This document shows positions 1,702 through 62,680 of a stretch of DNA of 64,000 bases, one piece after another (within the stretch, counting starts at the first letter, position 1; every line of letters starts with the position of its first letter). Source of the DNA: Mobula birostris (lineage: Eukaryota); assembly GCF_030028105.1 (NCBI RefSeq), contig NC_092384.1, positions 16,995,629-17,059,628 on the forward strand. The letters run 5' to 3'. The notes beneath the pieces are model-generated. The model did not search any database, was not told where the DNA came from, and saw only the letters and a list, made by a program, of their open reading frames with translations. A program made the position numbers and the translations under genes.

Positions 1702-1900
1702 TCAGGTGTAAGACTGTAAATAATGTAAAAACAGTACACTCGTTAACTTTTTCCCGTTCCGAAAAAGATTACTTTTCACATTTTCTTTCTCGTGTTTGTA
1801 CAGCTGTGCAGGCATATTCTCATTCCGGGTGGAGCTTGCTTTAAATGCTTCCGGTCGTACCTTGTTCGATAATCTAGCTGAAGTTGGCAGGAATTTTGAG
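1702..1900 (-). mobile_element. Possible L1 ORF1 C-terminal fragment
   Basis: Minus translation ARLSNKVRPEAFK..AQLYKHE..VKSNLF loosely resembles the C-terminus of fish L1 ORF1. Confidence 0.35.
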
Positions 1901-1919
1901 CGTTTCGTGAGATGCCACA

Positions 1920-2770
1920 CAGGTGTAAATCACTTTGCACTGAGCAGGACCGGGACCCCTCCTTGGAAACAGGACGTAGGGCCGGAACTCATACACAGAA
2001 CGCTGAGAAACAGATCTCCACTCAAGGTAGCGGCAAACTGCCGGACCTATCCAGGGGATGCCAGGGCACAAAGAGACGGTTCCCAACACAAGGCAGCAGC
2101 AAACGGTCGGACCTTCCTAGCGAAGGCGTGGACACAGAGACAGTTCAAAACAAGGATAGACAGTTCCTTATCTTGTTCCAGCGGATTAACTTGGCAGCGG
2201 TGCAGGCGAAGGTTGCAGGCGAGGGTTACAGGCGTGGCGAGGCAAGGCGAGGCAAGGCTTCAGACACTAGTTGCAGGGCAAGGCTACAGTAATTAGTTGC
2301 AGGGCAAGGTTTCAGACACAATGCGAATAATTTTTTTTAGTCAGAGGGTGCTTAATCTATAGATTTTGTTGCCACGGGCAGCAGTGGAGGTCAAGTCATT
2401 GGGTGTATTTAAGGCAGAGATTGATAGGTATCTGAGTAGCCAGGGCATCAAAGGTTATGGTGAGAAGGCGGGGCAGTGGGACAAAATGGGAGAATGGATC
2501 AGCTCATGATAAAATGGCGGAGAAGACTCAATGGGCCGAATGGCCGGCTTCCGCTCCTTTGTCTTATGGTCTTATGCAAGTCTCCAGGAGGACGGGGCCG
2601 AGAAGGGACTCAGACAGGGGGTTTGACGGGAACAATCCAGCAACTGAAGCTGAACCAAGGAGCTATTTATGTAGCCTGCCCAAAATGTCAATCAGCTGCC
2701 TCAATTAGAACACGCAACACAAAAAGGGAAACCAGAAAATTCGGACTTCACGGACCGGACCATAACATGG
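1920..2770 (-). mobile_element. LTR-type (Gypsy-like) LTR remnant interrupted by a CR1 3' fragment
   Basis: Ends in TTCACGGACCGGACCATAACA, matching the terminus of the solo LTR at 58503-59844; short GCAGGGCAAGG-type repeats; CR1 tail nested at ~2312-2578. Confidence 0.6.
2312..2578 (+). mobile_element. CR1 3' end fragment
   Basis: Nearly identical to the CR1 3' end at 8800-9108, including the (ATGGTCTT)n tail. Confidence 0.85.
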
Positions 2771-7711: not shown

Positions 7712-9108
7712 AGCTTGACATCGGTGGTTGGGATGTTGTTGGAGTCGATTGTGTAGGATGAGGTTACAGAATACCTGGAGGCATATGACAGAATAGGCAG
7801 AACTGAGCATAGATTCCCTAAAGGAAAATCCTGCCTGACAAACCTATTTCAATTTTTTGAGGAAATCATCAGTAGGCTAGACAAGGCAGATGCAGTGGAT
7901 GTTGTATATTTGGATTTTCAGAAGGCCTTTGACAAAGTGCCACACATGAGGCTGCTTAACAAGATAAGAGCCCATGGAATTACGGGAAAGTTACATACGT
8001 GGATAGAGCGTTGGCTGATTGGCAGGAAACAGAGAGTGGGAATAAAGGGATCCTATTCTGGTTGGCTACGGGTTACCAGTGGTGTTCCACAGGGGTCCAT
8101 GTTTGGGCCGCTTCTTTTTACATTGTCCATCAACGATTTGGGTTATGGAATAGATGGCTTTGTGGCTAAGTTTGCTGACGATACGAAGATAGGTGGAGGG
8201 GCCGGTAGTGCTGAGGAAACGGAGAGTCCACAGAGAGACTTGGATAGATTGGAAGAATAGGCAGAGAAGTGGCAAATGAAGTACAATGTTGGAAAGTGTA
8301 TGGTTATGCACTTTGGCAGAAAAAATAAACGGGCAGACTATTACTTAAATGGGGAAAGATTTCAAAGTTAGGAGATGCAACGGGACTTGGGAGTCCTGGT
8401 ACAGGATACCCTTAAAGCTAACCTCCAGGTTCAGTCAGTAGTGAAGAAGGCGAATGCAATGTTGGCATTCATTTCTAAAGGAATGGAGTATAGGAGCGGG
8501 GATGTGATGTTGAGGCTCTATAAGGCGCTGGTAAGTCCTCACTTGGAGTACTGTGGGCAGTTTTGGTCTCCTTATTTAAGAAAGGCTGTGCTAACGTTGG
8601 AGAGGGTACAAAGAAGATTCACTAGAATGATTCCGGGAATGAGAGGGTTAACATATGAGGAACGTTTGTCCGCTCTTGGACTGTATTGCTTGGAGTTTGG
8701 AAGAATGAGGGGAGACCTTATAGAAACATTTCGAATGTTAAAAGGCATGGACAGAGTGGATGTGGCAAAGTTATTTCCCATGATGGGGGAGTCTAGCACG
8801 AGAGGGCATGACTTAAGGATTGATGGGCGCCCATTCAGAACAGAAATGCGAAGAAATTTTTCTAGTCAGAGGGTGGTGAATCTACGGAATTTCTTGCCAC
8901 AGGCAGCAGTGGAGGCCAATTCATTGGGTGTATTTAAGGCAGAGATTGATAGGTATCTGAGCAGCCAGTGCATCAAAGGTTATGGTTAGAAGGCGGGGGA
9001 GTGGGACTAAATGGGAGAATGGATCAGCTCATGATAAAATGGTGGAGCACACTCGATGGGCCAAATGGCCGACTTCTGCTCCTTTGTCTTATGGTCTTAT
9101 GGTCTTAT
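7712..9108 (+). mobile_element. CR1 LINE, 5'-truncated (RT domain to 3' tail)
   Basis: ORF 7895-8260 (DVVYLDFQKAFDKVPH..SGVPQGS..FADDTK) and ORF 8375-8989; (ATGGTCTT)n tail. Confidence 0.95.
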
Positions 9109-16817: not shown

Positions 16818-16872
16818 ATGGCGGAGAAGTTTACGGTTTCGTACATGACACTTCTGGCTATTACTTGGCTAA
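16818..16872 (+). CDS. Exon 1: signal peptide MAEKFTVSYMTLLAITWL
   Basis: ATG in good context (AAGATGG), hydrophobic core, donor A|GTATGC in phase 1; continues I-VKVTA on exon 2. Confidence 0.75.
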
Positions 16873-19800
16873 GTATGCTGATTTATACACGCCGTTTCCG
16901 AATTGAATATTCCGTTTAATAATATTTAACCCTCGGTGCCTGCAGCATATTCGGTTACCGTTTTTCGTCTATTCGGCCGTTTCTCGCTCTTAGATGTTTA
17001 GTGACTTACGTCATCAGTTTTTGTTAATTCACTGTGTTTAACTGTTATTAATACTCTTGCTTACTTTTCCGGCAGTCGTCAAAGTAACTGCGAACGAAGT
17101 ATCTCAATTCCCGAGGGACTTGGATGTCCTGGGTGGTGCGAATGTTACTATGTTCTGCAAATTTCCACTAACACAAGGTACCGTTGACGTTCGTTGGTGG
17201 AGGCAAGGCGAGAAGGCATTTTTAGAAAGGGACAGCAGAAGACAATTTACTGTAGAAAGGGGAAGAGGAACGCTTGTACTTTGGAATGTCAAATTCAACG
17301 ACTCTGGACTGTATTACTGTGAAGTAAAGTTTCAGGAGCAATCTTTCGGGAGAAGCTGTAGCACCAAGCTCACTGTGTTCGGTAAGTGTGGTTGTTTGGA
17401 GATTTTCGGCTCTGTGCATTTTACATCAAACTTAGTGATAAGGATAAAACGGAATGTTTCTACTTGATAATACAAACGGCGAGAATACATTTGTTTCCCG
17501 CGTTAAAATATACCCCAGTCCAGGGATTCTAAATTCAGAACTACAAAGAACAGAAAAAATTTATGTAGCAACTATTAGGCGCATAATGGAGTTGATTCTG
17601 TTTATCGTATCGTACTTCCTCGGCTCTTCCTTACTGCTGTTTGTCCAGCCCGGTTCATCAGCTATCTCCTAGTTAAACCTGATGACTAAAGTCAGTGATA
17701 CCTTAGGACTTTACCCTCATTATCGCGAAGGTACTTTGAATACAACGAATGACTTTTCAAGCAAGGTTAGGATTGTTTTGCAAGCAAGGGGCTGAACTAA
17801 TATCAATATTAATATGAATGGCTGGCGTTGGATAACTCGATTCGTCTTTACTAAGGACGCAAAATATTAATACTTAAATAGAATAATCTCTATCAAAGAG
17901 TCTGTATGCAGCAGCACAATGCTCCAATCCGCATCAACAAGTAGAGAGGAATAATACCCAACTCCTAACGAGTTAATTCCAACATCAAGTAACAATTTGT
18001 CGCTTGCACTGCAAACTGTCATCCCAACTTTTTTCATGCAGGATTAGCAAAATCTAAACTTCTTTCACCATACAAAATGGGGAGTAATAGAGGCCTCTCG
18101 AGATCGAGGTGAATTTTGATAGGGTTAGATCGTAAAGGGTTGAGAGTCGAGCGCAAACCCACATTCAACATGTCCGCTGGCAGCTCATTCCACAATAGCA
18201 ATACCGTCTGAGTGAAAACGTTTCCGCTGATGTTCGCCTTTAATACTTCTCATTTTACTCTTAAGCTATGACTTCTAATTACATTCTCACCAATCTCAGT
18301 GGATGAAGCAGGCTTACATGCATCAGATCTACATCCCTCATAATTTTGTATACCTCTATCAAATGTTTGCTTGTTCTGTTACGAATCATGAGCAAAAATC
18401 CTAACCTGTTAAACCTTTGCTCGTCATCCATGTCCTCAAATTCATGCCACATCTTTGTAAGTTTTCTTTGTATTTATTCAATCGTATTTAAACTTTACTG
18501 AAGATAGGTAACCAGAATTGCGAACAATACTCCAGATTTGTTCTGAATAACGTCTAATACAACTTCAACATGGCATCCCAACTTCTACGCTCAATACTCT
18601 GATATATGAAGGCCGATATGACAAAGGTTATCGTTACGATACCATCCGCCTTTGACTTCACTTTCAATGAATTATCAATCTATATTCCAAGATAACTTTT
18701 TACCACACTTCCTAATGCGAGTCTCTTTCAGTTTGTATATCCGAGATTGGTTTGTCTTCCCAAAGTAGCAGCATACAATTACCTTCATTAAATTCTATCT
18801 GCGATTTTCAGTCCACCTGGTCTATAACCCGCTGCAAGCTTTGATAGGCATGCAGTCCAGCACTAGTCAAAGGCCTTCGCTCAAAGAACAACCATCTACT
18901 ACCATACTCTGGCTGCTCCCGCGAAGCCTACGTTAGACACAACTTACTCCATCATCCTGAATGCGAAGCGAACGTACTTGATTAGCCCACCACCCTCAGG
19001 CAGAACTTTTCTAAAGTAATTGCTAAAATCCATGTTGACTATATCCACTGTTATCCTTCATCAAGATCAATGGTAACCGGCTCGAAAAGCTCATTAAGAT
19101 TGGTTTTACACAGTCTACCTTGCAAAAAACATGTTGTGTAATCCCAATCAAGCCCAGTCTATTTATTTCTCCTATTGTTTAGAATATCTTTCAATACATT
19201 ACCCAGTTATCTGTAATACCAACTAGTCTATAATATCTCGGCTTATTCCGAGAGTCCATCTTGAACAACGGCACACTAGATACATAATTGGAGCAACACA
19301 CATAAAAATTGCTGGTGAACGCAGCAGGCCAGGCAGCATCGATAGGAAAAGGTACGGTCAGCGTTTCGGGCCGAGACCAATTGGAAAGCAAGTTCATGGG
19401 AAACTGAAAGATCTGAAGGTAGGTAATTCACCTGGATCAGATGATGAACATCCCAGGATTCTGGTAAATGTTGCTCATAGGATTGTGGATGTTTTAATAA
19501 GGTCTTTCAATAATTACTAAATTCTTGAGTGGTTTCGATAGACAAGAAAATTGTAAATGTCACTCCACTCTTCAAGAAGCCTGAAGGCGGAAAAGGGAAA
19601 CTGTAGGCCAGTCAGTCTGACCTCACTAGTTGACAAGATGTTGGAGTCCATCATTAAGGATCAGGACTTAGGTTAGCTGGAGACACATAATAAAACACGC
19701 ACTATTCAGCATAATTTCCTGAAAGGAAACTCTCGCCAGACAAATCTGATTGAATTATTTGAAGGAATAAAAAGTGGGATAGATAAAGATAGGCAGAATC

Positions 19801-22800
19801 GGTTGTTATGCACTTGGATTTTCAGAAGGCCTTTGACAAGGTACCACACACAATGCTGTTAAACAAGCTACGAGCCCAAAGTATTACAAGAAAGATAATA
19901 GGGTGGATAAAGCAGTGGCTGGTTGGTAAGTGACAAACAATGGGAATAAAGTGAGCATTTTCTGGTTGGCTGCCCGTGACTAACGGAGTTCCACAGGGGT
20001 CTGCGCTGTGACCGATTCGTTCAATGTTATCTGTCAATGATATGGATGGTGGAATTGATGGCTTTGTTGCAAAGTTTGCAGACGATATGAAGAGAGGTGG
20101 AGAGGCAGGCAGTTTTAGGAAATAGAGAGGCTACAGAAGGACTGAGACAGATTAGGAGGGCAGGCAAAGAAATGGCAGGTGGAATGCAGTATCGAGAAGT
20201 GTGTGAGCATGCAGTTTGGTGGAGGGTGTGAAAGTTTTGAATATGTTCTAACTGGAGAGAAAACACAAAAAAGAAACATTCAGGTGCAAAGGGATTTGGG
20301 AGTCCGTGTGCAGTATTCCATACAGGTTAATTTGCATTTTGGGTCTGTGGTCAGGAAGGCAAATCCAATGATCGCATTCATTGCAAAAGGACTAGAATAT
20401 AAGGGCCAGGATGTAATGTTCAGACTTCATAAAGCACTGGTGAGGCGTGAGGCGTCACGGCGTATTTTGCATCTTGGCCCCCGAAGAACAATGTTTCGCT
20501 TCAGAGTGTGTGTGTATGGTTGAGCAACAATAAACAGAACGTGAAATTGAAAGGATTTATTAAATACTGGTTAATACTGCGGGTAACTAATTTGATAGTT
20601 GAACGTCATGCTAGTTGGAGGGGAGATAAGGGAAGTTACCTGTACTGATATGGATTGAAAATACTCAATATAACTATGTTTTTACTCAAGCTCCTCCAAC
20701 TCCATTGGAAATTGTTCCTGTTGGAGGGTTTTCGTTTCCTCGAAAGCTCCTTTGTAAAACGGCTGCCTTCTACCCGGAGGAATTAGAAATCGTTTGGCAA
20801 AGAAATAACAAGCAAATTCGCACTGGAATAGAGAGTGTGAAAAACCGAAGCGTGGATGGATTGTTCGAAGCTTTTAGTTTATTGGAAATCACGCAGTCTA
20901 CTTGGGAAAAAGATGTTTACACCTGCCTGGTGTCGCATGGCTCCCTCACGGTGCCTGCCAGTTTCAGCTTCGTCCAGGACCAAGGTAAGATGGTGTTTTG
21001 ATGAAGTCATGATGTTGGATCTCGGCCTTAAACGTCGACATTTTAGATCTGCCTGATGGGCTGAGTTCCTCCATTTTATGTGTTATTCTGAATTCAGCAT
21101 GTTCAGAATCTTCTGTGCTCAATGTAAATGGAAGTCTTTACAAGTCATAGCTTGTGGGGTAAATGTGACCTTGTTAAGAACAGTAACTGAACAGCTACCC
21201 AAACACGGAAAGAATGGCTAATTTTGAAGTTTAGTAATTGACAGGGAATATTAAACGTGAACGGTGTTCAAAAGTTAAAGTGTTATTCCGGTCAGTGTTA
21301 ATCGTGTAGGACGAATAAGGAAATTGAATTCGTGCAATATTTGTAAGGTAGCAAACGTTTGAACATTTGCTAAAAATATGACAAAGCAAAACTTAAACTC
21401 TAAAAGACATAGTAATATAACAAAGGTGAGAATATGCATTTCGTATCTTACGATATATTTCCCGATCGTGTGTACTGAGATTTGAAACGAGCCTGTAAAA
21501 TATTTTGGATTGTTGATTGTCATGTGTGCATTTGTTTTTAGATGAAGAAATGCTTCACAGTTTCTTGTTTTTCCCCCTATTGATCCACAAGGTGCTGATA
21601 CTAAATTGATTCTCTCATATACACTGAAGGGAGCGGCAATTTTAGCACTGATAATGGTTTTGGTGACAGTCAACTTAAAGAGATCGCACGGTAAGAACGA
21701 TGATCGCTGAGAAACATCACCTCTATTCGTCCAAACAGATGCGTTAATGATATTTAACCGCAAAACAGTAAATGCCCTTTACAAAATGACTGGACATGGA
21801 TTGCGATTTTCGAAGTCAGACTCAGTGATAATGCCCAGTTACAATAGAAGGTAGATCTTAAAATTCAACTATTTCACCAGTCCACTCGAAGTATTACACA
21901 TCTCATTCACAAATGCTTTTCTATAATTTTGGAGTTCTTCAACTGTTTTAAATGCAATGGCAGATCTATACTTTGAAGCGTAAAGAACACTGACGAGCTC
22001 GTGCATGTCTCATTGATTTTAATTTCCATTTCAGCGACAGTATTTAAGTGTAGTACGGCCACTGATATACTATTATCACTTTACAGCTTCGTTAAAAGTT
22101 TATTGAGCATAGTGCCATGAGGTTGACGCGGAACACACACTGTATCAGGACAATTGATATCACCAAATGCTTTCTGAAATATCCGTACCTTGCGCAGTTC
22201 GTCTTACACAATGAATTCGATTCGTATCAAACGAATAAAGTCCAATTTTTACAATACAAATAATTTATTTTATTTTTCTTAAGGGATTAACAGAAGTTCC
22301 TTGAACAGATGTCAGAATGAGGAGCCGGTAGGTGAACTGGATCGTCTTCTTTCAGAGCCATGTATACGCATAGTAGAGATATTATAAATTTATTTTGTTC
22401 CACAACATTTTGGAATGCAGTAGGGAAGAATGAAACCATTCTCTCTGACCAGTTTTTAAATTTTGAAGTATATATCCAAGATGTATTTGAATATTCCTGT
22501 TGAATATGCTTCAAATCGTCTTTGAGGATTCAACACCAGTTCATAACCGGTTGCATTAAGGCGCTCGGCAATATTAACTAATGGACGTTAAGCAGTTACT
22601 CATACTTCGTGTGGCGAATAATTAAATACAAATCTAAGACTGGGATGTTTTAGATGTAAAATGTCGGTTTACGAGAATTGCGATGTAGTGCCAATCGGAA
22701 AATACAGTACACGCACGAATCATTTCGCAATATATGTTACATTTGATTTGAACGCACAGTAAGCAAGCTTAAAAATGCAATGAAATCTTGCTTTGGAACG

Positions 22801-24328
22801 TCATATGCAGTTTTTAACCCCGATTCCCAACAAAGATTCACACAGCCGTGCATAACCTGCAATGTAATCGAATATGCTTCCAATTAAACCTTGTACTATC
22901 TGGTGCACAATGATACCCAAACCAAACTCCACAAGACACCTTCTACTCCACGGGGCTACGCTGAACGATGATCATCCTCAATTTGGAAAGAAATGCCTGA
23001 AACATATAAATGTATTGTCATCTCCCATTTTGGATTCAAACCAGATATTAAAAACCTATAACGACATCTTTGGAGGCAGTAATAGTTGTCCCTTCAGATG
23101 GAACCTCCTTCCCCAGAAAGCAACGTAAATGTTAGCTGTTTCTCTTTGCTCTCGTGTTTCCTGTTTCACCGTAAGTTTTATTTGTCTGTTTTATTTCATA
23201 TTTCCAGCAGTTTAATGTTATTAAATTTGTCCCACCTGGATTCTCCTGATAGGATATATTAAATATTTATCGGTTGTATACCCATCTGTCTACAACTGGA
23301 AACGTCTTCTTGTGTTCCATTAATCGCCTTCCCAATTTTAGCACATATTTTTACTTTTACGTAACAATAGCTGCTGCAGCAACTTTTCACATCACCAAAA
23401 CAAGAATGTCATATATAATACTGGTTTTATTATAGCAGAATTCCGTAAGTACTTTCATCAGTGTTCGTAGTACTTCTTGGAATGAAGGACTGCTAATGCG
23501 AGGAATACCTAAGTTGAAGCTAGAACATTCAAGATAACATTTTCACTGTTGTTTTATTGCTCTGGTATGCTATGTCATTGTTTAAGCCAAAACAAATGCT
23601 ATTTTAACTATTTACTTTAACGGGCAAGTCCATCTGCTCTAATTATTTCGATCGTAGTTTAATTGATGCACTAGTAAAACCAATCAGCTCATCAGCGGGC
23701 AAGATGCTTCTCCCATATTTGCTGCCTTAGTTACGTAAGTACACCAGGTCTTGCCATTTGTTTCAAGGTTCATAACTTAAACAATGCGAGCTTTAAGGGT
23801 CACCGTTTCGAATTGCACCGAGGGGACGAAATCTGGTCATGCCAATGATTACAATTATTTGACGGGGTGCGTAAGGGAAACGGATCGGATAAAGCCCATG
23901 CAAAAAAAAACTTAGAGGATCGTAACTAGAGATATGACAAAAAAAATGAAACAAAAGAGATGGCCAGAACTGAGAAACGCCTCGATAGATAGGAAGGTTT
24001 TAACTGGTTGTTTGGAAATCTAATGTACACAGCGATTTCCCGCCTGAAATGGATTTGGTATCCCACTCCTGTAAGATATAGGGACAATATTTTTGTGCGC
24101 ACCCAAAATGTTACTCCAACCATTTAAAATAATTTTCTATGATTACATGTTCCGAATCGAACTTAGTTCATGGTCACTGACCTCTGTATTCGTTACCAGT
24201 ATTAACTGTGTTTTCTCTAGCAGGCTGAACAAGGAGCGGTTGAGCACGCCACTGCTTATAATTCACTAAATATGAGGGAGAGCACAGGAATTCGCAAAGA
24301 TCCACAACAAGAAGTGCGCATTATCTAA
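16818..24328 (+). CDS. SIRP-like / non-rearranging antigen-receptor-like Ig-superfamily receptor (leader-VJ-C1-TM-cytoplasmic), ~300 aa; join(16818..16872,17076..17381,20691..20984,21592..21690,22284..22327,24224..24328)
   Basis: Six consecutive GT-AG exons with compatible phases (1,1,1,1,0) give an uninterrupted ORF with signal peptide, V-set, C1-set, TM and tail. An exon-6-skipping form joining 22327 to 26625..26756 would be ~309 aa. Confidence 0.88.
17076..17381 (+). CDS. Exon 2: V-set Ig domain with germline-joined J-like strand
   Basis: Acceptor CTTACTTTTCCGGCAG; VSQFP..GANVTMFC, VRWWRQ, DSGLYYC, FGRSCSTKLTVF; donor G|GTAAGT. Confidence 0.95.
18060..19270 (-). mobile_element. Degenerate CR1 fragment in intron 2
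   Basis: The reverse complement resembles CR1 RT and C-terminal sequence; heavily mutated. Confidence 0.65.
19400..20455 (+). mobile_element. CR1 RT fragment in intron 2
   Basis: RPVSLTS, LDFQKAFDKVPH, GVPQGS and KFADD motifs with stops. Confidence 0.85.
20691..20984 (+). CDS. Exon 3: C1-set Ig domain
   Basis: APPTPLEIVP..KLLCKTAAFYPEELEIVWQRN..DGLFEAFSLLEI..YTCLVSHGSL: the FYP, DGxF and YxCxVxHxSL C1 motifs; acceptor ..TTTTTACTCAAG, donor G|GTAAGA; phase 1-1. Confidence 0.95.
21592..21690 (+). CDS. Exon 4: transmembrane exon GADTKLILSYTLKGAAILALIMVLVTVNLKRSH with intramembrane Lys
   Basis: 99 nt, phase 1-1; polypyrimidine acceptor ..TCCACAAG, donor G|GTAAGA; ~22-residue hydrophobic stretch followed by KR; Lys codon at 21627-21629. 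Confidence 0.88.
22284..22327 (+). CDS. Exon 5: cytoplasmic GINRSSLNRCQNEEP
   Basis: Acceptor TATTTTTCTTAAG, donor CCG|GTAGGT; 44 nt converts phase 1 to phase 0 as required by the downstream exons. Confidence 0.75.
22773..23072 (-). pseudogene. Possible decayed MHC class I-like alpha1/alpha2 sequence, antisense in intron 5
   Basis: One minus frame with 3 stops reads RYRFLISGLNP..LYVSGISFQIEDDHRSA*PRGVEGVLW..YSITLQVMHGCVNLCWESGLKTAYDVPKQDFIAF; TLQxMxGC and AYD..DFIAF resemble class I alpha2 motifs. Spacing is imperfect. Confidence 0.35.
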
Positions 24329-24334
24329 TCTCAG
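24224..24334 (+). CDS. Exon 6: cytoplasmic (Q)AEQGAVEHATAYNSLNMRESTGIRKDPQQEVRII* with in-frame TAA at 24326-24328
   Basis: NAGNAG acceptor TTTTCTCTAG|CAG (start 24221 or 24224), donor CAG|GTAACG; the last 14 codons align without gaps to paralogue 40179-40220, which has TAT at the stop position. Confidence 0.8.
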
Positions 24335-24379
24335 GTAACGCCGACAGATTAGCTTGAAGAACATATGAATTTGTTTTTG

Positions 24380-24622
24380 AGATATAGCACTGCAACAGAG
24401 CCATCCGGCGGAACTAGTTCGTCCCGCCCAATTACACCCATGTGACCAATTAGCATACTCAACAGTTCGTCTTTGGAATGTGAGAGGAAGTCAGAGCGCC
24501 CGAAGAAAATCGTACGGTCATGGGGCGACGAACAAACACACTATTTAGTCAGGGACGGAAATTCAACCTGGATCACTGCTGCTGTAATACGGTTACGCTA
24601 GCCTCTACGCCATCGTGCCACC
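24380..24622 (-). mobile_element. tRNA-derived SINE (V-SINE/HE1-like)
   Basis: The reverse complement starts GGTGGCACGATGGCGTAGAGG (A-box-like) ..CCAGGTTGAATTTCC (B-box-like), then a TAATTGGTCACATGGGTGTAATTGGGCGG core; a remnant is shared at ~40262-40340. Confidence 0.7.
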
Positions 24623-24629
24623 CAAAATA

Positions 24630-25345
24630 TATATAAGACCAACATATAATTGAACATTATTAGATTATGAGAACACTAAGTCCCTTTTTATTGTCATTTA
24701 GAAATGCATACATGCATTAAGAAATGATAAAATGTTTCTCTGGAGTGATATCACAGAAAACAAGACAGACCAAAGACTAACACTGACACAACGACATAAT
24801 TATAATATATAGTTACAGCAATGTAAAGCAATACCACAATTTGATAAAGAACAGACCATGGGCACAGTGAAATAAAGTCTCAAAGTCCGGAGTCGATCGA
24901 CTCCTGAGTCCCCGATAGCAGGCGGCAAAAGGGAGAAACTGCCTGCCATAAAACTCCAGACACCGTCAACTTGCCGATACCTTGGAAGCAGCCGACCCTA
25001 GCCGACACTGAGTCCGTCCGTTCGAAAACTCCGAGCTTCCGACCAGCCTTTCCGATACAGCCTCCCGAGCGCCATCCTCTGCCGAGCGGCTTCGGCCTCT
25101 CCCCGGCCGCTGAAACACGCAAAGCCGAGGATTTCCGGGCCTTCTGCTCCGGAGATATCCGGTTACCACACAGCACCAACGGCAGCGAAGCAGGCATTTC
25201 AGAAGCTTTCCAGGTGTTCCGCTGTTATCTCACGTCTGTCTCCATCAAATCAGAATTGCTCACGGTCCCCTACTTGACAGATAACAGTTTTTCATCACCG
25301 AAGTGGCCGCGGGCACTGACGTCACACCGCCATCTTCTCCCCCCT
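24630..25345 (-). mobile_element. Non-autonomous LINE-derived element (AAGATGGCGG 5' motif, CATAATCTAAT tail)
   Basis: Same family as 40340-41020 (shared CTTCTGAAATGCCTGCTTCGCTGC core); no coding capacity. Confidence 0.6.
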
Positions 25346-25449
25346 CCCGCGAGGCTCATTTTACGACACTGAGCAGACCTTTGGCACTTTACCAAAATGT
25401 AGACTGCACCAGAGCTCACCCTCTTTCACAGAAAATGAACCTGGTACCA

Positions 25450-25985
25450 TTTACAACTGAACGCTCTCGAAATATAATCACCTTTTACTTCAGTCCAGGT
25501 GGACTCCAACCTGAAGGCATGAACACTGATCTCTCGAACTTTTGAACTATTTCATCATCCCCCTTCTCTTTTTTCTCTATTCCTAATTCTGACTTCCTTT
25601 CACCTTTTCTCTCCTCTCCATCTGCCCATCACTTCCACTGGTGCACCTCTTCCTTCCATTTCATCCAGGGTCCACTGTCACCTCCTAAAAGATTCCTTCT
25701 TGCACCCTTTTCCTTTTCCACCTATCACCTCCCAGCTAACTACGTCATTCCATCCCCGATCATTCACACAGCTTCTTACTCACCCGGTTTCTCCTATCAC
25801 CTGCCATTTTGTACTCTTTCCACACCCTGTTATTCTAGCTTCTGACCACTTCTTTTGCTGTCCTGATAAAGCGCTTCGGACAGAAACGTCGACAGTTTAT
25901 ATGCCTTCATACATGCTACCTTACCTAATGAATTACATCGGCATTTTCTTGCATTTCTCAAGACTTTCAGCATCTACAGGAACCT
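25450..25985 (+). mobile_element. Penelope-like element 3' fragment
   Basis: CTCCAACCTGAAGGCATGAAC (end of GIY-YIG ORF), pyrimidine-rich tract and terminal GAAACGTCGAC motif; orthologous copy at ~41120-41635. Confidence 0.75.
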
Positions 25986-26624
25986 TCGAGATTATCTTTT
26001 TCCCATTGCTTTTACGAATTTGATTTCATATGTTATGTGCAAACAAGGAAACACTAAAAAGCATGAAACTAGATATAACCATCCTTTGCAACGCCTATTA
26101 CCAGCTCCATAATGGACATGAATAACTGATCCAACCGAACAGTGGTGTTATTCATGGAAATATCGAATAGTGACAAAACAGTAACCATACGGCATGGATC
26201 ATGACAGTGTCTGTGAGCATTTGGAGTTCTGCAGGAAACACCCGGAAGATCTCTTGACTGAAACGTTTGCGGCAATCAGACACATATAACACAAAAAGGC
26301 GCTTGCATTTTGAGGTATAAAATATTTTGTACTATACCCGTTTAAGGAGTTACCTACTCTCCCAAGTCGATTTTGTTAAAATTCATTTCAAGTAAGGAAA
26401 GAAACGCTTATATTTCTGTGGGACGACGCAGGTTCTTGGAGTTGAAATACCACATGAATCAAAAAGCAAAATTTTGAAAAAAAATGACATAAACATTGTG
26501 TAAAGCGGCAGACACCTAAAATTGATAACTTATGAGTGCATAACTAATTTATTTCATAATTTTTGATTCGATTTGTCAACTCGATGATTGTCGATTAACC
26601 ACTAATTTCAAATTATTTTCACAG

Positions 26625-26756
26625 ACTAAAAGAAATGGAGCTGACAATCTGGCTTACGCCGCTCTGCAGTTTCCCGATTCCAAGAACACCTCAGCAGCCC
26701 AACATCAAAACCAACATACATTGTATACAGATGTAAATGCATCAAGGAAACTGTGA
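26625..26756 (+). CDS. Exon 7 (terminal): TKRNGADNLAYAALQFPDSKNTSAAQHQNQHTLYTDVNASRKL* with ITIM (LAYAAL) and ITSM (TLYTDV)
   Basis: Acceptor ATTATTTTCACAG, phase 0, 44 codons to TGA; ITIM 26649-26666, ITSM 26718-26735. Translated only if exon 6 is skipped or its stop is absent. Confidence 0.85.
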   Translation, partial: TKRNGADNLAYAALQFPDSKNTSAAQHQNQHTLYTDVNASRKL

Positions 26757-26949: not shown

Positions 26950-26955
26950 AATAAA
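26950..26955 (+). promoter_or_regulatory. Candidate polyadenylation signal
   Basis: AATAAA ~195 nt after the terminal-exon stop. Confidence 0.4.
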
Positions 26956-29879: not shown

Positions 29880-30790
29880 CAGTGCCATGCAAACGTTTAG
29901 GCACCCCTGAACTGATTTCCAAACGGCATAAAGTTAAAGATGACACATTTCTTTAATATTTTAAGGAAGATTACTTTTTTTTATTTCTATCGTTTACACT
30001 TTCAAAATAACAAAAAAAGGAAAAGGGCCCGAAGTAAAAGTTTGGACACCCAGCATGGTCAGTACTTAGTAACACCCCCTTGGACAAGTAACACACTTGT
30101 AAGTACTTCCTGTAGCCAGCAAACAGTCTTTCAATTCTTGTTTTGGGGATGTTCGCCCATTCTTCCTTGCAAACTGCACCTACCTCTGTGTGCTTCTTGA
30201 GCCGTCTTGCATGCACTGCTCTTTTGAGGTCTATCCACAGATGTTGGATGATGTTTAGGTCGGGAGACTGTGAGGGCAATGGCAAAACCTTCAGCTTGCG
30301 CCTCTTGAGGTAGTCCATTGTGGATTTTGACGTGTGTTTAGGATCAACATCCTGTTGTAGAAACCATCTTCTTTTCATCTTCATTTTTTCTTTTTTACAG
30401 ACAGTGTAATGTTTACTTCAAGAATTTGCAGGTATTTAATTTAATTCATTCTTCCATCTACTAGTGAAATGTTCCCCTTGGCACTGGCTGCAACACAAGC
30501 CCAAAGAATGATCGATCCACCCCCGTGCTTAACATTTGGAGAGGTGTTCTTTTCATGAAATTCTGCACCCTTTAATCTCCAAACATATTGCGGCCAAAAA
30601 GCTCTATTTTAACTTCATCAGTCCACAGAGCCTGTTTCCAAAATTAATCAGGCTTGTTTAGATGTTTGCAAACCTCTGATGCTGAATTTTGTGGTGAGGA
30701 CGCAGGAAAGATTTCTTACCACAGCCGCTGTCGCTGCATAGTAGAACAGTGCACCACCACTCCAGAGACTGCTAAATCTTCCTGAAGGTC
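29880..30790 (-). mobile_element. Tc1 DNA transposon, 3' part with one TIR
   Basis: TA|CAGTGCCATGCAAACGTTTAGGCACCCC TIR; ORF 29971-30384 has QQDVDPKH and SQSPDLNIIQHLW (degenerate DD34E domain). Confidence 0.92.
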
Positions 30791-38249: not shown

Positions 38250-39285
38250 ACAGGCTCAGTATGGACCGTAGGGACAAACTCTGGTCACGACAATGATTAT
38301 AATAACGGAGAACCTCATCCTATTCATAGGACTGTTATAAGCGGTGATTTGAAAATCACCGCAACTTTTCGCAACCTCCGCCACATTCAACAGGAACCCA
38401 CCACTAAGCGCATCTTTCCCTCTCCACCCTCTCTGCTTTCCACCGGGACCGTTCCCTCCGCGACTCCCTGGTCCACACGTCTCTCCCCATGGATTTACCA
38501 CCCGGCACTTATCCCTGGAAGCCTACGTGCTACACCTGTCCTTACACATCCCCTCTTGCCACAATTCAGGGCCCCAAACAGTCCTTCCAGGTGAGGCAAC
38601 ACTTCACTTGTAAGTCTGTTGTGGTCATCTATTGCACCGGGTGCTCCTGGTGCGGCCTCTCTACATTGGTGAAACCTGACGCAGACTGCGGGACCGCTTT
38701 GTCGAGCACCTCCGCTCCATCCGCCACAACAGGCAGTATCTCTCAGTTGCCACCCACTTCAACTCTGCTTTACATTGCCATTCGGTTATGTCCATACATG
38801 GCCTTCTCCACTGCCGTGATGAGGCTAAACTCAGACTGGAGGAGCAACACCTCATATACCGCTTGGGTAGTCTCCAGCCCCTTGGTATGAACATTGAATT
38901 CTCCAGCTTCCGGCAATTCCCACTCCCTTCTGTCCCCCATCCCAGTTTCACTCTGACCCCTCCCCCAGCTGCCTATCACCTCCCTCATGGTACCTTCTCC
39001 TTCTACTACCCATTGTGCTTTCCGTCATACCTTCGTTACCTTTCCTACCTATTTCCTCCCTGCTTCGCCTCCCCCACCCCTTTATCTTTCCCCTTACTGA
39101 TTTATCACCTGGCATCTAGCAGCCTTCTCCTTCCCACTTTCCACCCCCCCCACACCTACTTTAGAGGACCTCTGCCCCTTCTCTCTTCAGTCCTGATGAA
39201 GAGTTCCGTTGTGAAACATTGACTGATCCTTTCCACGGATGCTGCCCGACCTGCTGAGTTCATCCAGCGTGCTGTAACTGTTGCT
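38250..39285 (+). mobile_element. Penelope-like element (GIY-YIG endonuclease and terminal region)
   Basis: CYTCPYTS..QSFQVRQHFTC..VIYC..CSWCGL.YIGET..LRLEEQHLIYRLGSLQPLGMNIEF across frames. Confidence 0.9.
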
Positions 39286-40105: not shown

Positions 40106-40162
40106 GTTTAGGTTTTACAACTCTAAGTTAGTTTATGATCACTGAGCTAACCTGAACTATAG

Positions 40163-40220
40163 GGAGAGCAAACCATTTCGCAAAGATCGACAACAGGTGG
40201 ACCGCGTTATCTATTCCCAG
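40163..40220 (+). pseudogene. Exon 6 remnant of the paralogue (..RKDRQQVDRVIYSQ|GT)
   Basis: Donor CAG|GTAAAG retained and Tyr codon TAT at 40212-40214; the acceptor and 5' part of the exon are deleted relative to 24181-24270. Confidence 0.75.
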
Positions 40221-40339
40221 GTAAAGCAGAGAGATTAGCGTGAATATGATACAGATTTTCATTAGAGATATACCACGGTAACTGACCTTTCCGGTGCAAC
40301 TAGTCCTTGCCGCGCAGTCACACCCATGTGACTAATTGA

Positions 40340-42575: not shown

Positions 42576-42707
42576 ACTAAAGGAAATGGAGCTGACAAAT
42601 TGACTTATGTCGCTCTGCAGATTCCCGATTCGAATTATACACAGGCATCCAAACGTCAAAGTATACGTACATTACACGCAGGTGTAAGTACATCAAAGAA
42701 GCTGTAA
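42576..42707 (+). pseudogene. Paralogous terminal exon TKGNGADKLTYVALQIPDSNYTQASKRQSIRTLHAGVSTSKKL* (ITIM kept, ITSM Tyr to His)
   Basis: Acceptor TTACTTTCACAG intact; 44 codons, gap-free alignment with 26625-26756 and stop at the same codon. Confidence 0.82.
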
Positions 42708-47324: not shown

Positions 47325-49750
47325 AAACATGAGGAAATCTGCAGATGCTGGAATTTCAAGCAGCACACATAAAAGTTGCTGCTGAACGCAGCAGGCCAGG
47401 CAGCATCTCGAGGAAGAGACACAGTCGACGTTTCGGGCCGAGACCCTTCGTCAGGACTAACTGACAGAAGAGCTAGTAAGAGATTTGAAAGTGGGAGGCC
47501 GGGAGGGCAGGGAGCCGAAATGATAGGAGAAGACAGGAGGGGGAGGGATGGAGCCAAGAACTGGACAGGTGATAGGCTAAAAGGATATGAGAGGATCATG
47601 GAACAGGAGGCCTAGGGCGAAAGAAAAGGGGAGGGGGAAAATCAGAGGATGGGCAAGGGGTATAGTGAGGGGGACAGAGGGATAAAAAGGAGAGAGAGAA
47701 AATGAATCTATGTATATAAATAAATAACGGATGGGGTACGAGGGGGAGGTGGGGCATTAGCGGAAGTTTTGAAGTCAATGTTCATGCCATCAGTTTGGAG
47801 GCTACCCAGACGGAATATCAAGTGTTGTTCCTCCAACCTGAGTGTGGCTTCATCTATACAGTAGAGGAGGCCGTGGATAGACATGTCAGAATGGGAACGG
47901 GACGTGGAATTAAAATGTGTGGCCACTGGGAGATATTGCTTTCTCTGGCAGACAAGCGATCTTCCAGTCTGCGGCGGGTCACGCCAGTGTATAGAAGGCC
48001 ACATCGGGAGCACCGGACTGAGTATATCACCCCAGCCGACTCACAGGTGAAGTGTCGCCTCACCTGGAAGGATTGTCGGAGGCCCTGAATGGTAGTGAGG
48101 GAGGAAGTGTAAGCGCATGTGTACACTTGTTCGGAGGAATGCGGCGGAGACGGAGGAATTGCGAGAAGTGGAAGGCATTTTTGGAAGAGGCAGGGTGAGA
48201 AGAGCAATAGTCCTGATAGCTGTGAGAGTCAGTAAGCTTATAGTAGGCATCAGTAGATAAGCTGTCTCCAGAGACATAGATAGCAAGATCTAGAAAGGGG
48301 TGGGAGAGTCGGAAATGGACCAGGTAAACTTGAGGGCAGGCTGAAAGTTGGAGGCAAAGTTTATTAAATCAACGAGTTCAGCAGGCGTGCAGGAAGCAGC
48401 GCCAATGCAGTCGTCGATGTAGTGAAGGAAAAGTGGGGGACAGATACCAGAATAGGTTTGGAACATAGATTGTTCCACAAAGTCAACAAAATGGCAGGCA
48501 TAACTAGGACACATACGGATGTTCCGTCTAGCGGAAATAGTCCTTAATCTTAATAATTTCTTCTTTGCCTCCTCCCACTTCCTCTAAACTAAAGGTGTAG
48601 TCTTGGGCGCCCGCTTTCCATTCCAGGACGAAGGAGATATCCTCCTTTTTTGAAGAAATGGGCTTCTGCTCTCAAGCGCATCTCCCCTATTTCACGCACA
48701 TCTGCTCTCACTCCGTCCTCTCGCCACCCCACTCGGAATAGGGTTCCCCTTGTCCTCAGCTACCAATCCACCAGCCTCCGTGTCTAACATATAATTCTCT
48801 GTAACTTCTGCCACCCCCAACAGGATCCCACCACTAAACACATACTTCCTTCCCCCACCTCTGCTTTCCGCTGCGATCGCTCCCCACGCGACTCCCTTGT
48901 CCATTCGTACCCCCCATCCGTCCCCACCGATTACCCTCCTGGCACTTATCCACGTAAGCGGAGCACGTGCTACTCGTGCCCTTACACTTCCTCCCTCACT
49001 ACCATTCAGAGCCCCGGACAGTCCTTCCAGGTGAGGCGACACTTCACCCGTGAGTCGGCTGAGGTCATATACTGTGTCCAGTGCTCCCGATGTGGCCTTC
49101 TATCCATTGGCGAGACCCGCCGCAGACTGGGAGATCGTTTCGCTGAATAGCTACGCTCTGTCCGCCATAGAAAGCAGGATCTCCCAGTGGCCACACATTT
49201 TAATCCCACATTCAATTCCCATTCTGACATGTCTATCCACGGCCTCCTCTACTGTAAATATGAAGCCACACTCAGGTTGGAGGAACAACACCTGATATTC
49301 CGTCTGGGTAGCTTCCAACCTGATGGCATGAACATGGACTTCTCAAACTTCCGCTAATGGCCCACCTCCCCCTCGTACCCCATCCGTTACTTATTAATAT
49401 ACATACATTCTTTTTCTCTCTCTCCTTTTTATCGCTCTGTCCCCCTCACTATACCCCTTGCCCATCCTCTGGTTTTACCCCCTCCCCCTTTTCTTTCTCC
49501 CTAGGCCTCCTGTCCCATGATCCTCTCATATCCCTTTTGCCAATCAACCGTCCAGCTCTTGGCTCCATCCCCCCCCCTCCTGTCTTCTCCTATCATTTCG
49601 CGCCACCCCCGCCTCCCACTTTCAAATCTCTTACTAGCTCTTCTGTCAGTTAGTCCTGACGAAGGATCTCGGCTCGAAACGTCGACTGTACCTCTTCCTC
49701 GAGATGCTGCCTGGCCTGCTGCGTTCACCAGCAACTTTTATGTGTGTTGC
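47325..49750. mobile_element. Penelope inverted-repeat structure (minus arm with RT fragment ~47325-48525, plus arm ~48526-49750)
   Basis: The terminal ~750 bp of each arm are reverse complements with high identity by eye; RT motif LFLHYIDDCIGAASC in ORF 48290-48514; 12/14 direct repeat at 47311-47324 and 49751-49764. Confidence 0.88.
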
Positions 49751-60229: not shown

Positions 60230-60960
60230 CAACAGTGAGGCAAAACCTCACTGTTGCCAGAGCTACCGATGCGGCCTTCTCTACATGGGTGGGACTCGAC
60301 GTAAACTGGGGACAAGTTTTTCAAGCCCCTCCAGTTCATCCCAAAATGCGGAATTTGCTAGTGGCCAATTACTTTTATTCCTACCCATTCAAGTTCTGAC
60401 ATGTCGGTTCACGTCCTCTTCTACGCCTTCATGAGGTTACCCTCTGGGTGCGCGAGCAACACTTCCGGATTCAGTTTATGTAGCCTCCAACCTGACGACA
60501 TGAACATCGACTTCTCCTTCAGGTATTTTTCCCTCCCATGTCTCTCTTCTGTTCCCACCTCTGTGCTCTTATCTTCTCTGCTCTCCTGCCTATAACTTCC
60601 ACTTCTGTCCCACTTCCTTCCCTTTCTCCAGTAGTCTACTCTCTTCTCCTAATAGATTCCTTACTCTCCAGCTCTTTGCATTTTCAGCCTCTTCCCTCCC
60701 AGCTTCTTACTTCATCCCACCGCTCAACTGCACACGCTCCACTCCGCCTCCTCTAAGCACACTCAAACTTGCTTCACCTATCACCTTTTAATTTACCTTT
60801 CTTCTCACCGCCTTTTTATTCTGGAATCTTCCCTCCTCCTTTCCTGTCCTAATGTAGCGTCTCGGACCGAAACGTTGACCGTTGATTAATTTCCATAGAT
60901 GCTGCCTGATCCGCAAAGTTCACCTTGTGTGTGTTATCCTGGATTTCCAGTGTTTGCTGA
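60230..60960 (+). mobile_element. Penelope 3' fragment (degenerate GIY-YIG and terminal region)
   Basis: CGLLYMGGTRRKLG..LQPDDMNIDF; pyrimidine-rich tract; terminal GAAACGTTGAC. Confidence 0.75.
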
Positions 60961-61949: not shown

Positions 61950-62680
61950 TTTCACATTTTTTTTACTTCAATGCTTGGTCAATCTATTGTGCAATTCCTA
62001 CCCTGGTTTAACTAACCAAAGCACAACACTTCGCAAATGTCTGAGTTATATTCTATCTGCAATTGCTTGCCCTACTTTCGCAGTTTATTGTCGCAGTTAT
62101 CTTTCAGTCTAATATACCACCAATTTCGTTGCACTCCAAAATTTATTACCGAAGTTAAAAAATATTTTCATCTGAATATTTTGGAGATGACAAACAATAC
62201 TAGAACTGGAACCTACCTGTTCAGTACACCACTAGTTGCAGGCGGTCATTCTTGATATCAATTTTCTACTGTCACCGTCTGACTCCCTCTACCAAACCAA
62301 CGTTGTGTTCTTGTGCTCAGGTGGCTGGTTCACCCTGGCTCCAATGTCATCTAGTTTTCTATGGAGGCCTGCCATACGGGACCTTGCAAAAGTCAATAAG
62401 GGACAATTCCAGTTGCTGCACTCAGCAATTTTCTTCATCACCTCTTCAAAGCAACTCAATCAACTTTTTGTAAGAGATTCCAAATTATATATCCATTTTA
62501 CGGTCACTATTTCAAACTTTGTCTCTCCAAATTGTGATAGATTCTCTCTCTCCAATCCCCTGCAGTATCTTTTCACGCACCAATGTTGGGATCGCCAACT
62601 TGAACTCTCCTCTTGTCCTTGCAAATCTTCTTAAATAAATGCACATTTGTCACTCTCCAATGCTGCCGTAATACAGTCCT
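61950..62680 (-). mobile_element. Degenerate CR1 RT fragment
   Basis: The reverse complement resembles the DFxKAFDKVP and GVPQG regions. Confidence 0.55.

Follow-up and report, generated by a model that had tools for sequence, protein, structure and literature searches.

The window, by which we mean the whole 64-kb stretch of Mobula birostris DNA analysed, contains a V-C1 membrane receptor gene (Table 1) that is real and is already in the NCBI annotation as a predicted gene: splicing of exons 1 to 6 reproduces XP_072135415.1 (300 aa, the NCBI prediction, hereafter P0154) residue for residue over a span of 7511 nt (16818-24328) that matches the annotated one. All introns have a GT donor and an AG acceptor (phases 1, 1, 1, 1, 0 and 0), so that six of six are canonical, and there are no frameshifts. 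The leader, V, C1, transmembrane (TM) and three cytoplasmic exons that the first-pass annotation had described from the sequence were all found in their places, and its single C1-set domain is confirmed by the presence of only one C1 exon between V and TM. A polyadenylation-type AATAAA lies at 26950, 194 nt past the stop codon of exon 7, and another is at 24871.

Table 1. Exons of the M. birostris V-C1 receptor gene and relics of paralogues in the window
Feature	Position	Strand	Content
Exon 1	16818..16872	+	Translation start and bulk of the signal peptide; leader is split, with phase-1 donor; splices as in P0154
Exon 2	17076..17381	+	End of leader and compact V domain including G strand; Pfam V-set 1.1e-10, I-set 2.5e-8
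Exon 3	20691..20984	+	One C1-set Ig domain; Pfam C1-set 2.4e-13
Exon 4	21592..21690	+	Stalk and transmembrane helix (residues 225-245)
Exon 5	22284..22327	+	Cytoplasmic exon of 44 nt, phase 1 to 0; required for the P0154 sequence
Exon 6	24224..24334	+	Cytoplasmic; TAYNSL with Tyr278 codon at 24257-24259; in-frame TAA at 24326-24328
Exon 7	26625..26756	+	Intact open frame of 43 codons 3' of the stop; ITIM LAYAAL and ITSM TLYTDV
Relic of a paralogous exon 6	40146..40226	+	TAT (Tyr) and donor kept; 5' half gone, in-frame TGA upstream
Relic of a paralogous exon 7	42576..42707	+	ITIM kept (LTYVAL), last Tyr changed to His; no upstream V, C1 or TM exons
Relic of a C1 exon 3' end, P0186-type subfamily	1862..1948	-	In-frame stop

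The gene is surrounded by dead paralogue relics (at 1.9, 40.1 and 42.6 kb). No second full paralogue turned up in a search of the + strand from 27 to 40 kb, which yielded orphan tail exons only, and the 64-kb window holds no conserved flanking genes, only transposon open reading frames.

Pfam bears out both Ig domain assignments of the first-pass annotation (E-values in Table 1). The V domain scores 42.2 bits as V-set (cut-off 26), with nearly equal scores for I-set, and is compact, with 53 residues between its cysteines compared with the 65-75 residues usual in Ig and TCR V domains. The AlphaFold2 (AF2) model of the ectodomain (mean pLDDT 86.4) has no strand at model residues 43-54, and thus no C'' strand. 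All canonical Ig residues that form the invariant columns of the family are retained. The J-like strand (FGRSCSTKLTVF, 17345-17380) is encoded inside the V exon, as had been proposed, but the G-x-G that the family keeps is absent from this copy: the J position reads S-C-S-T-K-L-T-V, without either glycine of G-x-G-T/S-x-L-x-V, glycines that are kept in 67 of 72 relatives and lost in five. The manta copy has also gained an unpaired cysteine (Cys113, codon 17357-17359) and lost one N-glycosylation sequon; these two changes and the loss of the J glycines could mean early decay.

Scanning for a heptamer-spacer-nonamer recombination signal sequence (RSS) gave none within the V exon or adjoining it, and the 14 weak RSS-like matches across the 64-kb window correspond to the background rate, so that the earlier statement that there is no usable RSS stands. 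A rearranging gene is refuted by the placement of V and G strand in one exon without an RSS. It is extremely improbable that the locus represents an Ig light chain or TCR gene of either kind, rearranging or germline-joined, as some database names imply. The ectodomain does align over its full length with Ig lambda chains of the PDB, and the top Foldseek matches in the PDB, a search swamped by Fab light chains, are of that type; the V(J)-C1 layout, the split leader and, in 67 of the 72 relatives, the J motif are likewise those of Ig light and TCR chains. However, identity to Ig and TCR chains is just 18-23%, whereas family members are 31-85% identical to one another as far back as chimaera; the V domain has 10-15 fewer residues between its cysteines than those of Ig and TCR; and the gene possesses its own TM segment and long cytoplasmic tail. 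Of the description "TCR-chain-like" the layout survives, and nothing beyond it.

The C1 domain (PF07654, 50.6 bits, cut-off 21) has the Y-x-C-x-V-x-H motif, and its best sequence matches in the PDB are UrIg2, in first or second place, and Ig constant domains, although such ranks are inflated by multi-domain Ig heavy chains and, like those of Foldseek in the PDB, do not separate families; the per-domain score to UrIg2 (25-27.5 bits) is no better than that to an Ig lambda constant domain (27 bits). Like the manta gene, UrIg and UrIg2 do not rearrange: one exon encodes both V and J, the leader is split and C1-type domains are present. The V(J)-C1 family differs in having one C1 domain, a TM segment and signalling motifs, whereas elasmobranch UrIg is a secreted protein of three C domains and UrIg2 has approximately nine (PMC12227049). 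B7-H6 (NCR3LG1), other B7 and butyrophilin proteins and tapasin-related protein have a V-C1-type ectodomain as well and rank first by E-value (6e-15 to 4e-14) when Swiss-Prot is searched with Foldseek, but are only 20-23% identical to the manta protein, and the B7-type and tapasin-related families are not known to have the G-x-G-T-x-L-x-V J motif or the ITIM/ITSM tail layout. The NCBI name of the manta gene derives from B7-H6-type proteins.

A profile search identified 89 matches at E <= 1e-6. Of these, 88 belong to rays, sharks or Callorhinchus, and the remaining one to a teleost. The Callorhinchus matches bear near-consecutive locus numbers (LOC103185940 to LOC103185951), which suggests that they also form a tandem cluster. 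The long-tail members have about three to five tail tyrosines, in motifs such as TEYAPL, IIYSQT, LTYAAL (ITIM) and TLYADV (ITSM), with 23 residues between the ITIM and ITSM tyrosines. The chondrichthyan VJ-C1 family with an inhibitory tail that the first-pass annotation envisaged is therefore borne out as a non-rearranging family whose long tails carry ITIM and ITSM, but this gene is a short-tailed member of it. Database names for the family are inconsistent (SIRP-alpha-like, B7-H6-like, Ig-lambda-like as in "immunoglobulin lambda-1 light chain-like", "T cell receptor beta chain-like"), and a literature search found no published description of it. The PRARP genes are V-C2 or V-only and would therefore constitute a different family. 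Both the family profile search and a search with C1 only returned nothing but family members and so supplied no named SIRP, B7-H6, tapasin, UrIg, IgL or TCR references; ten outgroup matches carry only names such as "Ig-like domain-containing protein".

The TM segment of the manta gene includes a lysine, Lys231 (AAG, 21627-21629), in the outer third of the helix, at position 7 of the best 21-residue hydrophobic window and with NLKRSH following; the paralogues have glycine at this position. In exon 6, the in-frame TAA stands where the tyrosine of IIYSQT would be, 6 nt before the donor. The annotated product accordingly ends ...QQEVRII, with a tail of 53 residues in which Y278 (TAYNSL) is the sole tyrosine, because TAA replaces the second. 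TAYNSL fits the ITSM-like pattern T-x-Y-x-x-L, or a YxN tyrosine, and is not an ITIM. Nonsense-mediated decay usually requires a stop codon more than 50-55 nt before the last junction and should not be triggered here, because the stop is only 6 nt from the last exon junction. The four-tyrosine tail described earlier is a reconstruction: the second tyrosine is backed, as an ancestral residue, by the TAT of the exon 6 relic and by IIYSQT of the paralogues, but the gene itself has an in-frame TAA. Inhibitory signalling by the gene's own tail, which had also been put forward, is not supported: the tail breaks off beyond its first tyrosine, the TM segment has a lysine and the J motif is eroded, on account of which the gene is better described as a short-tailed, charged-TM variant.

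The remaining two motifs, LAYAAL and TLYTDV, are in exon 7, downstream of the TAA, and their translation would need skipping of exon 6. Such an mRNA, joining exon 5 to exon 7, would make the gene an inhibitory receptor with a multi-tyrosine tail of its own (ITIM plus ITSM, a four-tyrosine tail being impossible), which we regard as unlikely for the gene overall. The frame of exon 7 is intact and 34 of its 43 residues are identical to the tail of P0002, with both motifs kept and 23 residues between their tyrosines; exon 6 measures 111 nt from the acceptor of the NCBI model (24224) or 114 nt from an alternative acceptor (24221), both in frame, and is flanked by phase-0 introns; an isoform skipped in exactly this way is annotated for the paralogue P0153; and the AATAAA follows exon 7. 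However, the only NCBI model of the manta gene includes exon 6 and stops at the TAA, a frame of 43 codons may stay open fortuitously or be maintained by conversion from neighbouring genes, and a TM lysine is unusual among purely inhibitory members.

Two stingray genes end at the same residue as P0154: P0168 of Hemitrygon akajei (XP_072926710.1, ...QQEVRII) and P0196 of Hypanus sabinus (...QQEQRII). All three have AYT-(L/V)-(K/D)-G, a TM-exit VNLKRS, which follows VT in Mobula and Hypanus and VK in Hemitrygon, and AVEHATAY, and both stingray genes have aspartate at the TM position of Lys231. In a tree of TM plus tail, P0154 and P0168 are grouped with support of 98/97 and the three short-tail genes are united with 91/96. 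In a tree of ectodomains, P0154 lies inside a clade of Mobula sequences only (97/97), and the ectodomains of the three short-tail genes group with different paralogues; forcing that of P0154 together with those of Hemitrygon and Hypanus costs 47.3 lnL units (p-AU 0.02). The same end point and the shared TM and tail residues argue for an old and probably functional truncation, and the occurrence of the module in two dasyatids would place it before the split of Myliobatidae and Dasyatidae, with retention since. The stingray genes were compared as proteins, and their stops could be independent mutations of the same tyrosine codon. What appears to be new here is a truncated TM/tail module with a charged TM residue that is common to a manta and two stingrays.

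This recurrence also bears on whether the manta gene is a pseudogene in early decay, its stop, TM lysine and damaged J strand being unselected lesions in a birth-and-death cluster. The stop is premature, the near-invariant J glycine is lost as in just five of 72 relatives, dead relics flank the gene, and the Mobula hypostoma annotation has no close counterpart (nothing above 90% identity to P0154, which forms a one-member cluster). Nevertheless, we consider decay quite unlikely: the truncation point and the TM/tail signature recur in two other ray genera, the frame, all six introns and every structural Ig residue are preserved, and the AF2 model folds confidently.

We therefore regard it as fairly probable that P0154 is an intact, annotated, short-tail, charged-TM copy in a tandem V(J)-C1-TM family, with an old truncation, exchanged ectodomains and partner-dependent signalling. 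The full-length members, whose tails have ITIM and ITSM, are presumably inhibitory via SHP-type phosphatases. A change of tyrosine to stop would have cut the tail after TAYNSL in a protein with a TM lysine, while gene conversion or exon exchange may keep the ectodomains like those of local paralogues, a pattern expected of paired receptors. The product may reach the surface and signal through a TM partner, which for the manta lysine would be an adaptor of the DAP12 or FcR-gamma type with an acidic TM residue and an ITAM, and might thereby oppose or modulate its inhibitory neighbours; skipping of exon 6 could add an isoform with ITIM and ITSM. A single shared acidic-TM adaptor cannot explain all three genes, because the residue is lysine in the manta and aspartate in the stingrays.

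The manta gene is probably a partner- or adaptor-dependent, perhaps activating, variant within an inhibitory family. It has two features of an activating partner, namely a charge within the TM helix and an ITIM-free tail derived from an inhibitory form. Counting against the activating reading is the tail itself: its 53 residues, which still include an ITSM-like/YxN tyrosine, make it longer than the tails of classical activating partners.

A close parallel is with SIRP, in which SIRP-alpha is inhibitory and SIRP-beta1 activates through DAP12. Both families lack rearrangement, place a C1-set domain after the V domain and have a paired design, in which some members bear ITIMs on long tails and others combine a short tail and a basic TM residue; the two-domain model superposes best overall on SIRP (TM-score 0.75-0.78, rmsd 3.2-3.8 A), and NCBI names many family members "SIRP-alpha-like". 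As applied to this gene, that label holds as a loose resemblance but not in detail, since there is one C1 domain after V instead of two and identity is 16-19% in the structural alignment. Unlike SIRP, moreover, the manta gene has a compact V domain without C'' strand, a single tail tyrosine where SIRP-alpha has four in ITIM pairs, and a short form that still comprises 53 tail residues and one tyrosine, and the V(J)-C1 family is essentially confined to cartilaginous fish at the depth of the profile search used. KIR, LILR, teleost NITR and skate MDIR also form tandem clusters that evolve by birth and death, with ectodomains homogenised between partners, and families of this type have derived activating forms from inhibitory ones via a premature stop and a charged TM residue; their ectodomains are C2/I-set or V-only, unlike V plus C1.

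Among living animals, rearranging antigen receptors go back as far as the cartilaginous fish, and germline-joined V(J)-C1 receptors found there are for that reason compared with the presumed pre-RAG ancestor. The manta gene alone adds little on that ancestry, and its family is already in public annotation under misleading names. Its value would be as a concrete case of conversion from an inhibitory to a short-tail form, by tyrosine-to-stop change plus a charged TM residue, that Myliobatidae and Dasyatidae, two families of Myliobatiformes, have apparently both retained despite exchange of the ectodomain. This suggests that shark and ray V-C1 receptors act as paired systems like SIRP, KIR or LILR, and it offers Lys231, the stop and the skipping of exon 6 as testable features.

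A bolder reading, which we consider very unlikely, is that the truncated, charged TM/tail module acts as a mobile "switch cassette" of long standing, transferred or converted in rays onto several ectodomain lineages, and that opposite TM charges let V-C1 chains pair with one another in the manner of TCR and CD3; if so, a TCR-like assembly principle would exist within a germline-encoded receptor family. TM charges of either sign are present elsewhere in the family, as arginine in P0158 and P0162 and as glutamate in P0012.

The manta gene comprises seven exons (16818-26756, +), with AG acceptors, GT donors and intron phases of 1,1,1,1,0,0. Exon 2 matches the V-set (1.1e-10) and I-set (2.5e-8) and exon 3 the C1-set (2.4e-13) of Pfam, and the ectodomain is confidently predicted to fold as V plus C1 (mean pLDDT 86.4). 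Translation of spliced exons 1-6 gives exactly the 300-residue Mobula birostris protein XP_072135415.1 of the public databases (NCBI name: 'natural cytotoxicity triggering receptor 3 ligand 1-like'), whose gene, 7511 nt long, spans exactly 16818-24328; thus, the exon joins of the first-pass annotation are the NCBI pipeline's own choice. The gene is intact and already predicted in databases. What had been observed is real, yet overstated. The gene is a variant in a known kind of system, that of paired, non-rearranging IgSF receptors.

Features of the receptor gene and its surroundings (window positions)
Feature	Position	Strand	Remark
Exon 1	16818-16872	+	bulk of signal peptide
Exon 2	17076-17381	+	leader end and Ig V-type domain, G strand in same exon
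Cys113 codon	17357-17359	+	G-strand bulge
Exon 3	20691-20984	+	C1-set domain
Exon 4	21592-21690	+	stalk and transmembrane (TM) segment
Lys231 codon (AAG)	21627-21629	+
Exon 5	22284-22327	+	cytoplasmic
Read-through past exon 5 donor	22328-22387	+	start of intron 5
Exon 6	24224-24334	+	cytoplasmic
In-frame TAA	24326-24328	+	ends annotated protein
Exon 7	26625-26756	+	cytoplasmic
Dead C1 3'-end fragment	1862-1948	-	in-frame stop
Orphan exon 6 copy	40146-40226	+	5' half gone, TGA upstream
Orphan exon 7 copy	42576-42707	+	last tyrosine changed to His
Repeat-borne peptide	38821-38904, 47762-47884 (-), 49229-49345, 60401-60520, 62320-62403
Reverse-transcriptase fragments / transposase relic	7895-8989, 19808-20523 (+), 29971-30384 (-)

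Predicted proteins sharing this V-C1-TM layout number about 90 in a full HMMER search (query, the C1 exon) and two database searches; they are from rays (Mobula, Hypanus, Hemitrygon, Pristis, Narcine, Amblyraja, Leucoraja), sharks (Heterodontus, Heptranchias, Scyliorhinus, Chiloscyllium, Hemiscyllium, Mustelus, Carcharodon) and the chimaera Callorhinchus. The LOC numbers in the names of the Callorhinchus matches are nearly consecutive and suggest that these genes are arranged in tandem. Teleosts gave a single weak match (3.7e-8); because the search needs shared 5-residue words, distant bony-vertebrate relatives may have been overlooked. NCBI names these proteins inconsistently (SIRP-alpha-like, SIRP-beta-1-like, NCR3LG1-like, tapasin-related-like, PD-L1-like, CD276 homolog, Ig lambda-like, TCR beta-like, MHC class II alpha-like), and a literature search found no paper describing the V-C1-TM family. 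Tails of long-tail members contain T-x-Y-x-x-L and (I/V)-x-Y-x-Q-T, followed by an ITIM (L-T-Y-A-A-L) and an ITSM-like T/A-x-Y-A-D/E-V, the last two tyrosines having 23 residues between them, a spacing typical of docking sites for tandem-SH2 phosphatases. At the level of this family, the original interpretation, a non-rearranging TCR-chain-like receptor with a four-tyrosine tail, is reasonable.

The manta gene itself is a short-tail, charged-TM variant. The TAA, six bases before the exon 6 donor, occupies the position of the tyrosine in I-I-Y-S-Q-T of paralogues, and a dead exon 6 copy 16 kb downstream has TAT in its place; the four-tyrosine tail reconstructed in the first-pass annotation (TAYNSL, (I/V)IYSQT, LAYAAL, TLYTDV) is therefore ancestral and not the product of the manta gene. 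The stop replaces the second tyrosine, LAYAAL and TLYTDV are encoded beyond it by exon 7, and Tyr278 of TAYNSL is the single tail tyrosine left.

The short tail is also found in predicted proteins of the stingrays Hemitrygon akajei (P0168, XP_072926710.1), which ends in ...QQEVRII as the manta protein does, and Hypanus sabinus (P0196), which ends in ...QQEQRII. All three genes have derived features absent from long-tail paralogues: A/S-Y-T-(L/V)-(K/D)-G in the TM segment, V-N-L-K-R-S at its exit and A-V-E-H-A-T-A-Y in the tail. Maximum likelihood trees of TM plus tail unite the manta and Hemitrygon genes (98/97) and place the Hypanus gene with them (91/96). The manta ectodomain falls inside a Mobula-only clade (97/97), and constraining it to group with those of Hemitrygon and Hypanus lowers the log-likelihood by 47.3 units (p-AU 0.02; the same constraint on C1 alone is not significant, p 0.07); the Hypanus ectodomain, judged by eye, is a member of a further subclade. 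These sequences are most simply read as a truncated, charged-TM module that predates the divergence of Myliobatidae and Dasyatidae and was retained, while the ectodomains would have been homogenised with, or swapped among, adjoining paralogues; paired activating/inhibitory receptor families characteristically behave in this way. Alternatively, Tyr-to-stop mutations may have occurred independently at the same codon in manta and stingrays, the latter compared by protein. The age of the truncation under the simplest reading, a single origin before the split, is the new result of this analysis.

Long-tail paralogues have Gly in place of Lys231, which is the seventh residue of the best hydrophobic window (21 residues) and sits within the TM segment's outer third. 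The manta protein may depend on a TM partner, the obvious candidate being an acidic-TM ITAM adaptor of the DAP12/FcR-gamma type, which would make the gene the activating counterpart of its ITIM/ITSM-bearing neighbours. A substantial caveat is that the equivalent residue is Asp in both stingray genes, and Asp is unable to pair with such adaptors. TM charges of both signs occur within the family (also Arg in P0158 and P0162, Glu in P0012), and therefore chain-chain pairing among its members may be an alternative. The inversion of sign between the manta product (P0154) and P0168 and P0196 occurs at one position inside an otherwise conserved module.

Isoform switching by skipping of exon 6 would be a second possibility. 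Exon 6 is in frame between phase-0 introns, an exon-6-skipped isoform is annotated for the paralogue P0153, and the 43-codon frame of exon 7 is intact, matches a long-tail paralogue at 34/43 residues and preserves both ITIM and ITSM. Stop codons very near the last junction escape nonsense-mediated decay, and mRNAs including exon 7 should do so because the TAA is only 6 nt from that junction. Read-through past the exon 5 donor adds 19 residues before a stop, and NCBI models P0012 (M. hypostoma) and P0155 (M. birostris) end in a homologous peptide of equal length; intron 5 retention may be a second route to short tails in the family, or these ends may reflect an annotation habit.

V domain and G strand are contiguous within one exon, and no recombination signal sequence (RSS; heptamer, 12/23 spacer, nonamer) turned up at the V exon when the window was scanned, the 14 weak matches across the whole 64 kb being background; the gene is non-rearranging, as first proposed. 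The family consensus of the J-like G strand, G-N-G-S/T-G-T-x-L-x-V, matches the G-x-G-T-x-L-x-V canonical in antigen-receptor J segments and is present in 67/72 relatives, but the manta gene (F-G-R-S-C-S-T-K-L-T-V-F) and its closest Mobula sisters have lost it, the manta strand with loss of an N-glycosylation sequon and gain of an unpaired Cys113. This extra extracellular cysteine replaces J-motif glycines of relatives, is also found in the closest Mobula paralogues (P0151, P0179, P0180), and could form an interchain disulfide. In the compact V domain the cysteines are 53 residues apart and the structure model shows no C'' strand, which weakens the analogy to an antigen-receptor V.

None of the known families stands out as nearest. 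By sequence, Ig lambda chains can be aligned over the full length of the ectodomain, and the C1 domain finds its best PDB matches in UrIg2 and Ig constant domains, rankings inflated by multi-domain chains, with per-domain scores all about 25-27 bits. By structure, the best E-values against Swiss-Prot models are to B7-H6, tapasin-related protein, CD276, Ig lambda, TCR beta, PD-L1 and SIRP-alpha, all at 16-23% identity. The proposed likeness to SIRP-alpha holds for superposition, which is best on SIRP-alpha and SIRP-beta-1 (TM 0.75-0.78), but not for the missing four-tyrosine tail or the single C1; the defining SIRP layout is V-C1-C1. UrIg and UrIg2 are ruled out by their three and about nine C domains, respectively (PMC12227049), and an Ig or TCR gene by the missing RSS and the gene's own TM segment and tail.

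The locus is a birth-and-death cluster. Most of the window is repeat-derived, and outside the gene it contains transposon ORFs and three dead pieces of family genes. The orphan copies of exons 6 and 7 are 76-77% identical to the manta gene's own exons and closest to the tail of P0152 (Hypanus sabinus, long-tail), and V, C1 and TM exons are missing ahead of them in the window. The C1 fragment represents another subfamily, most like P0186 and P0061, and faces away from the manta gene. Reverse-transcriptase fragments, one in intron 2 of the manta gene, accompany a Tc1/mariner-type transposase relic. A repeat-borne peptide (…EATLRLEEQHLI-RLGSLQP-GMNIDFS…, and GGWFTLAPMS…) is present several times in the window and also forms the N-termini of the family models P0061, P0068 and P0186, extensions that look like transposon sequence drawn into the gene models.
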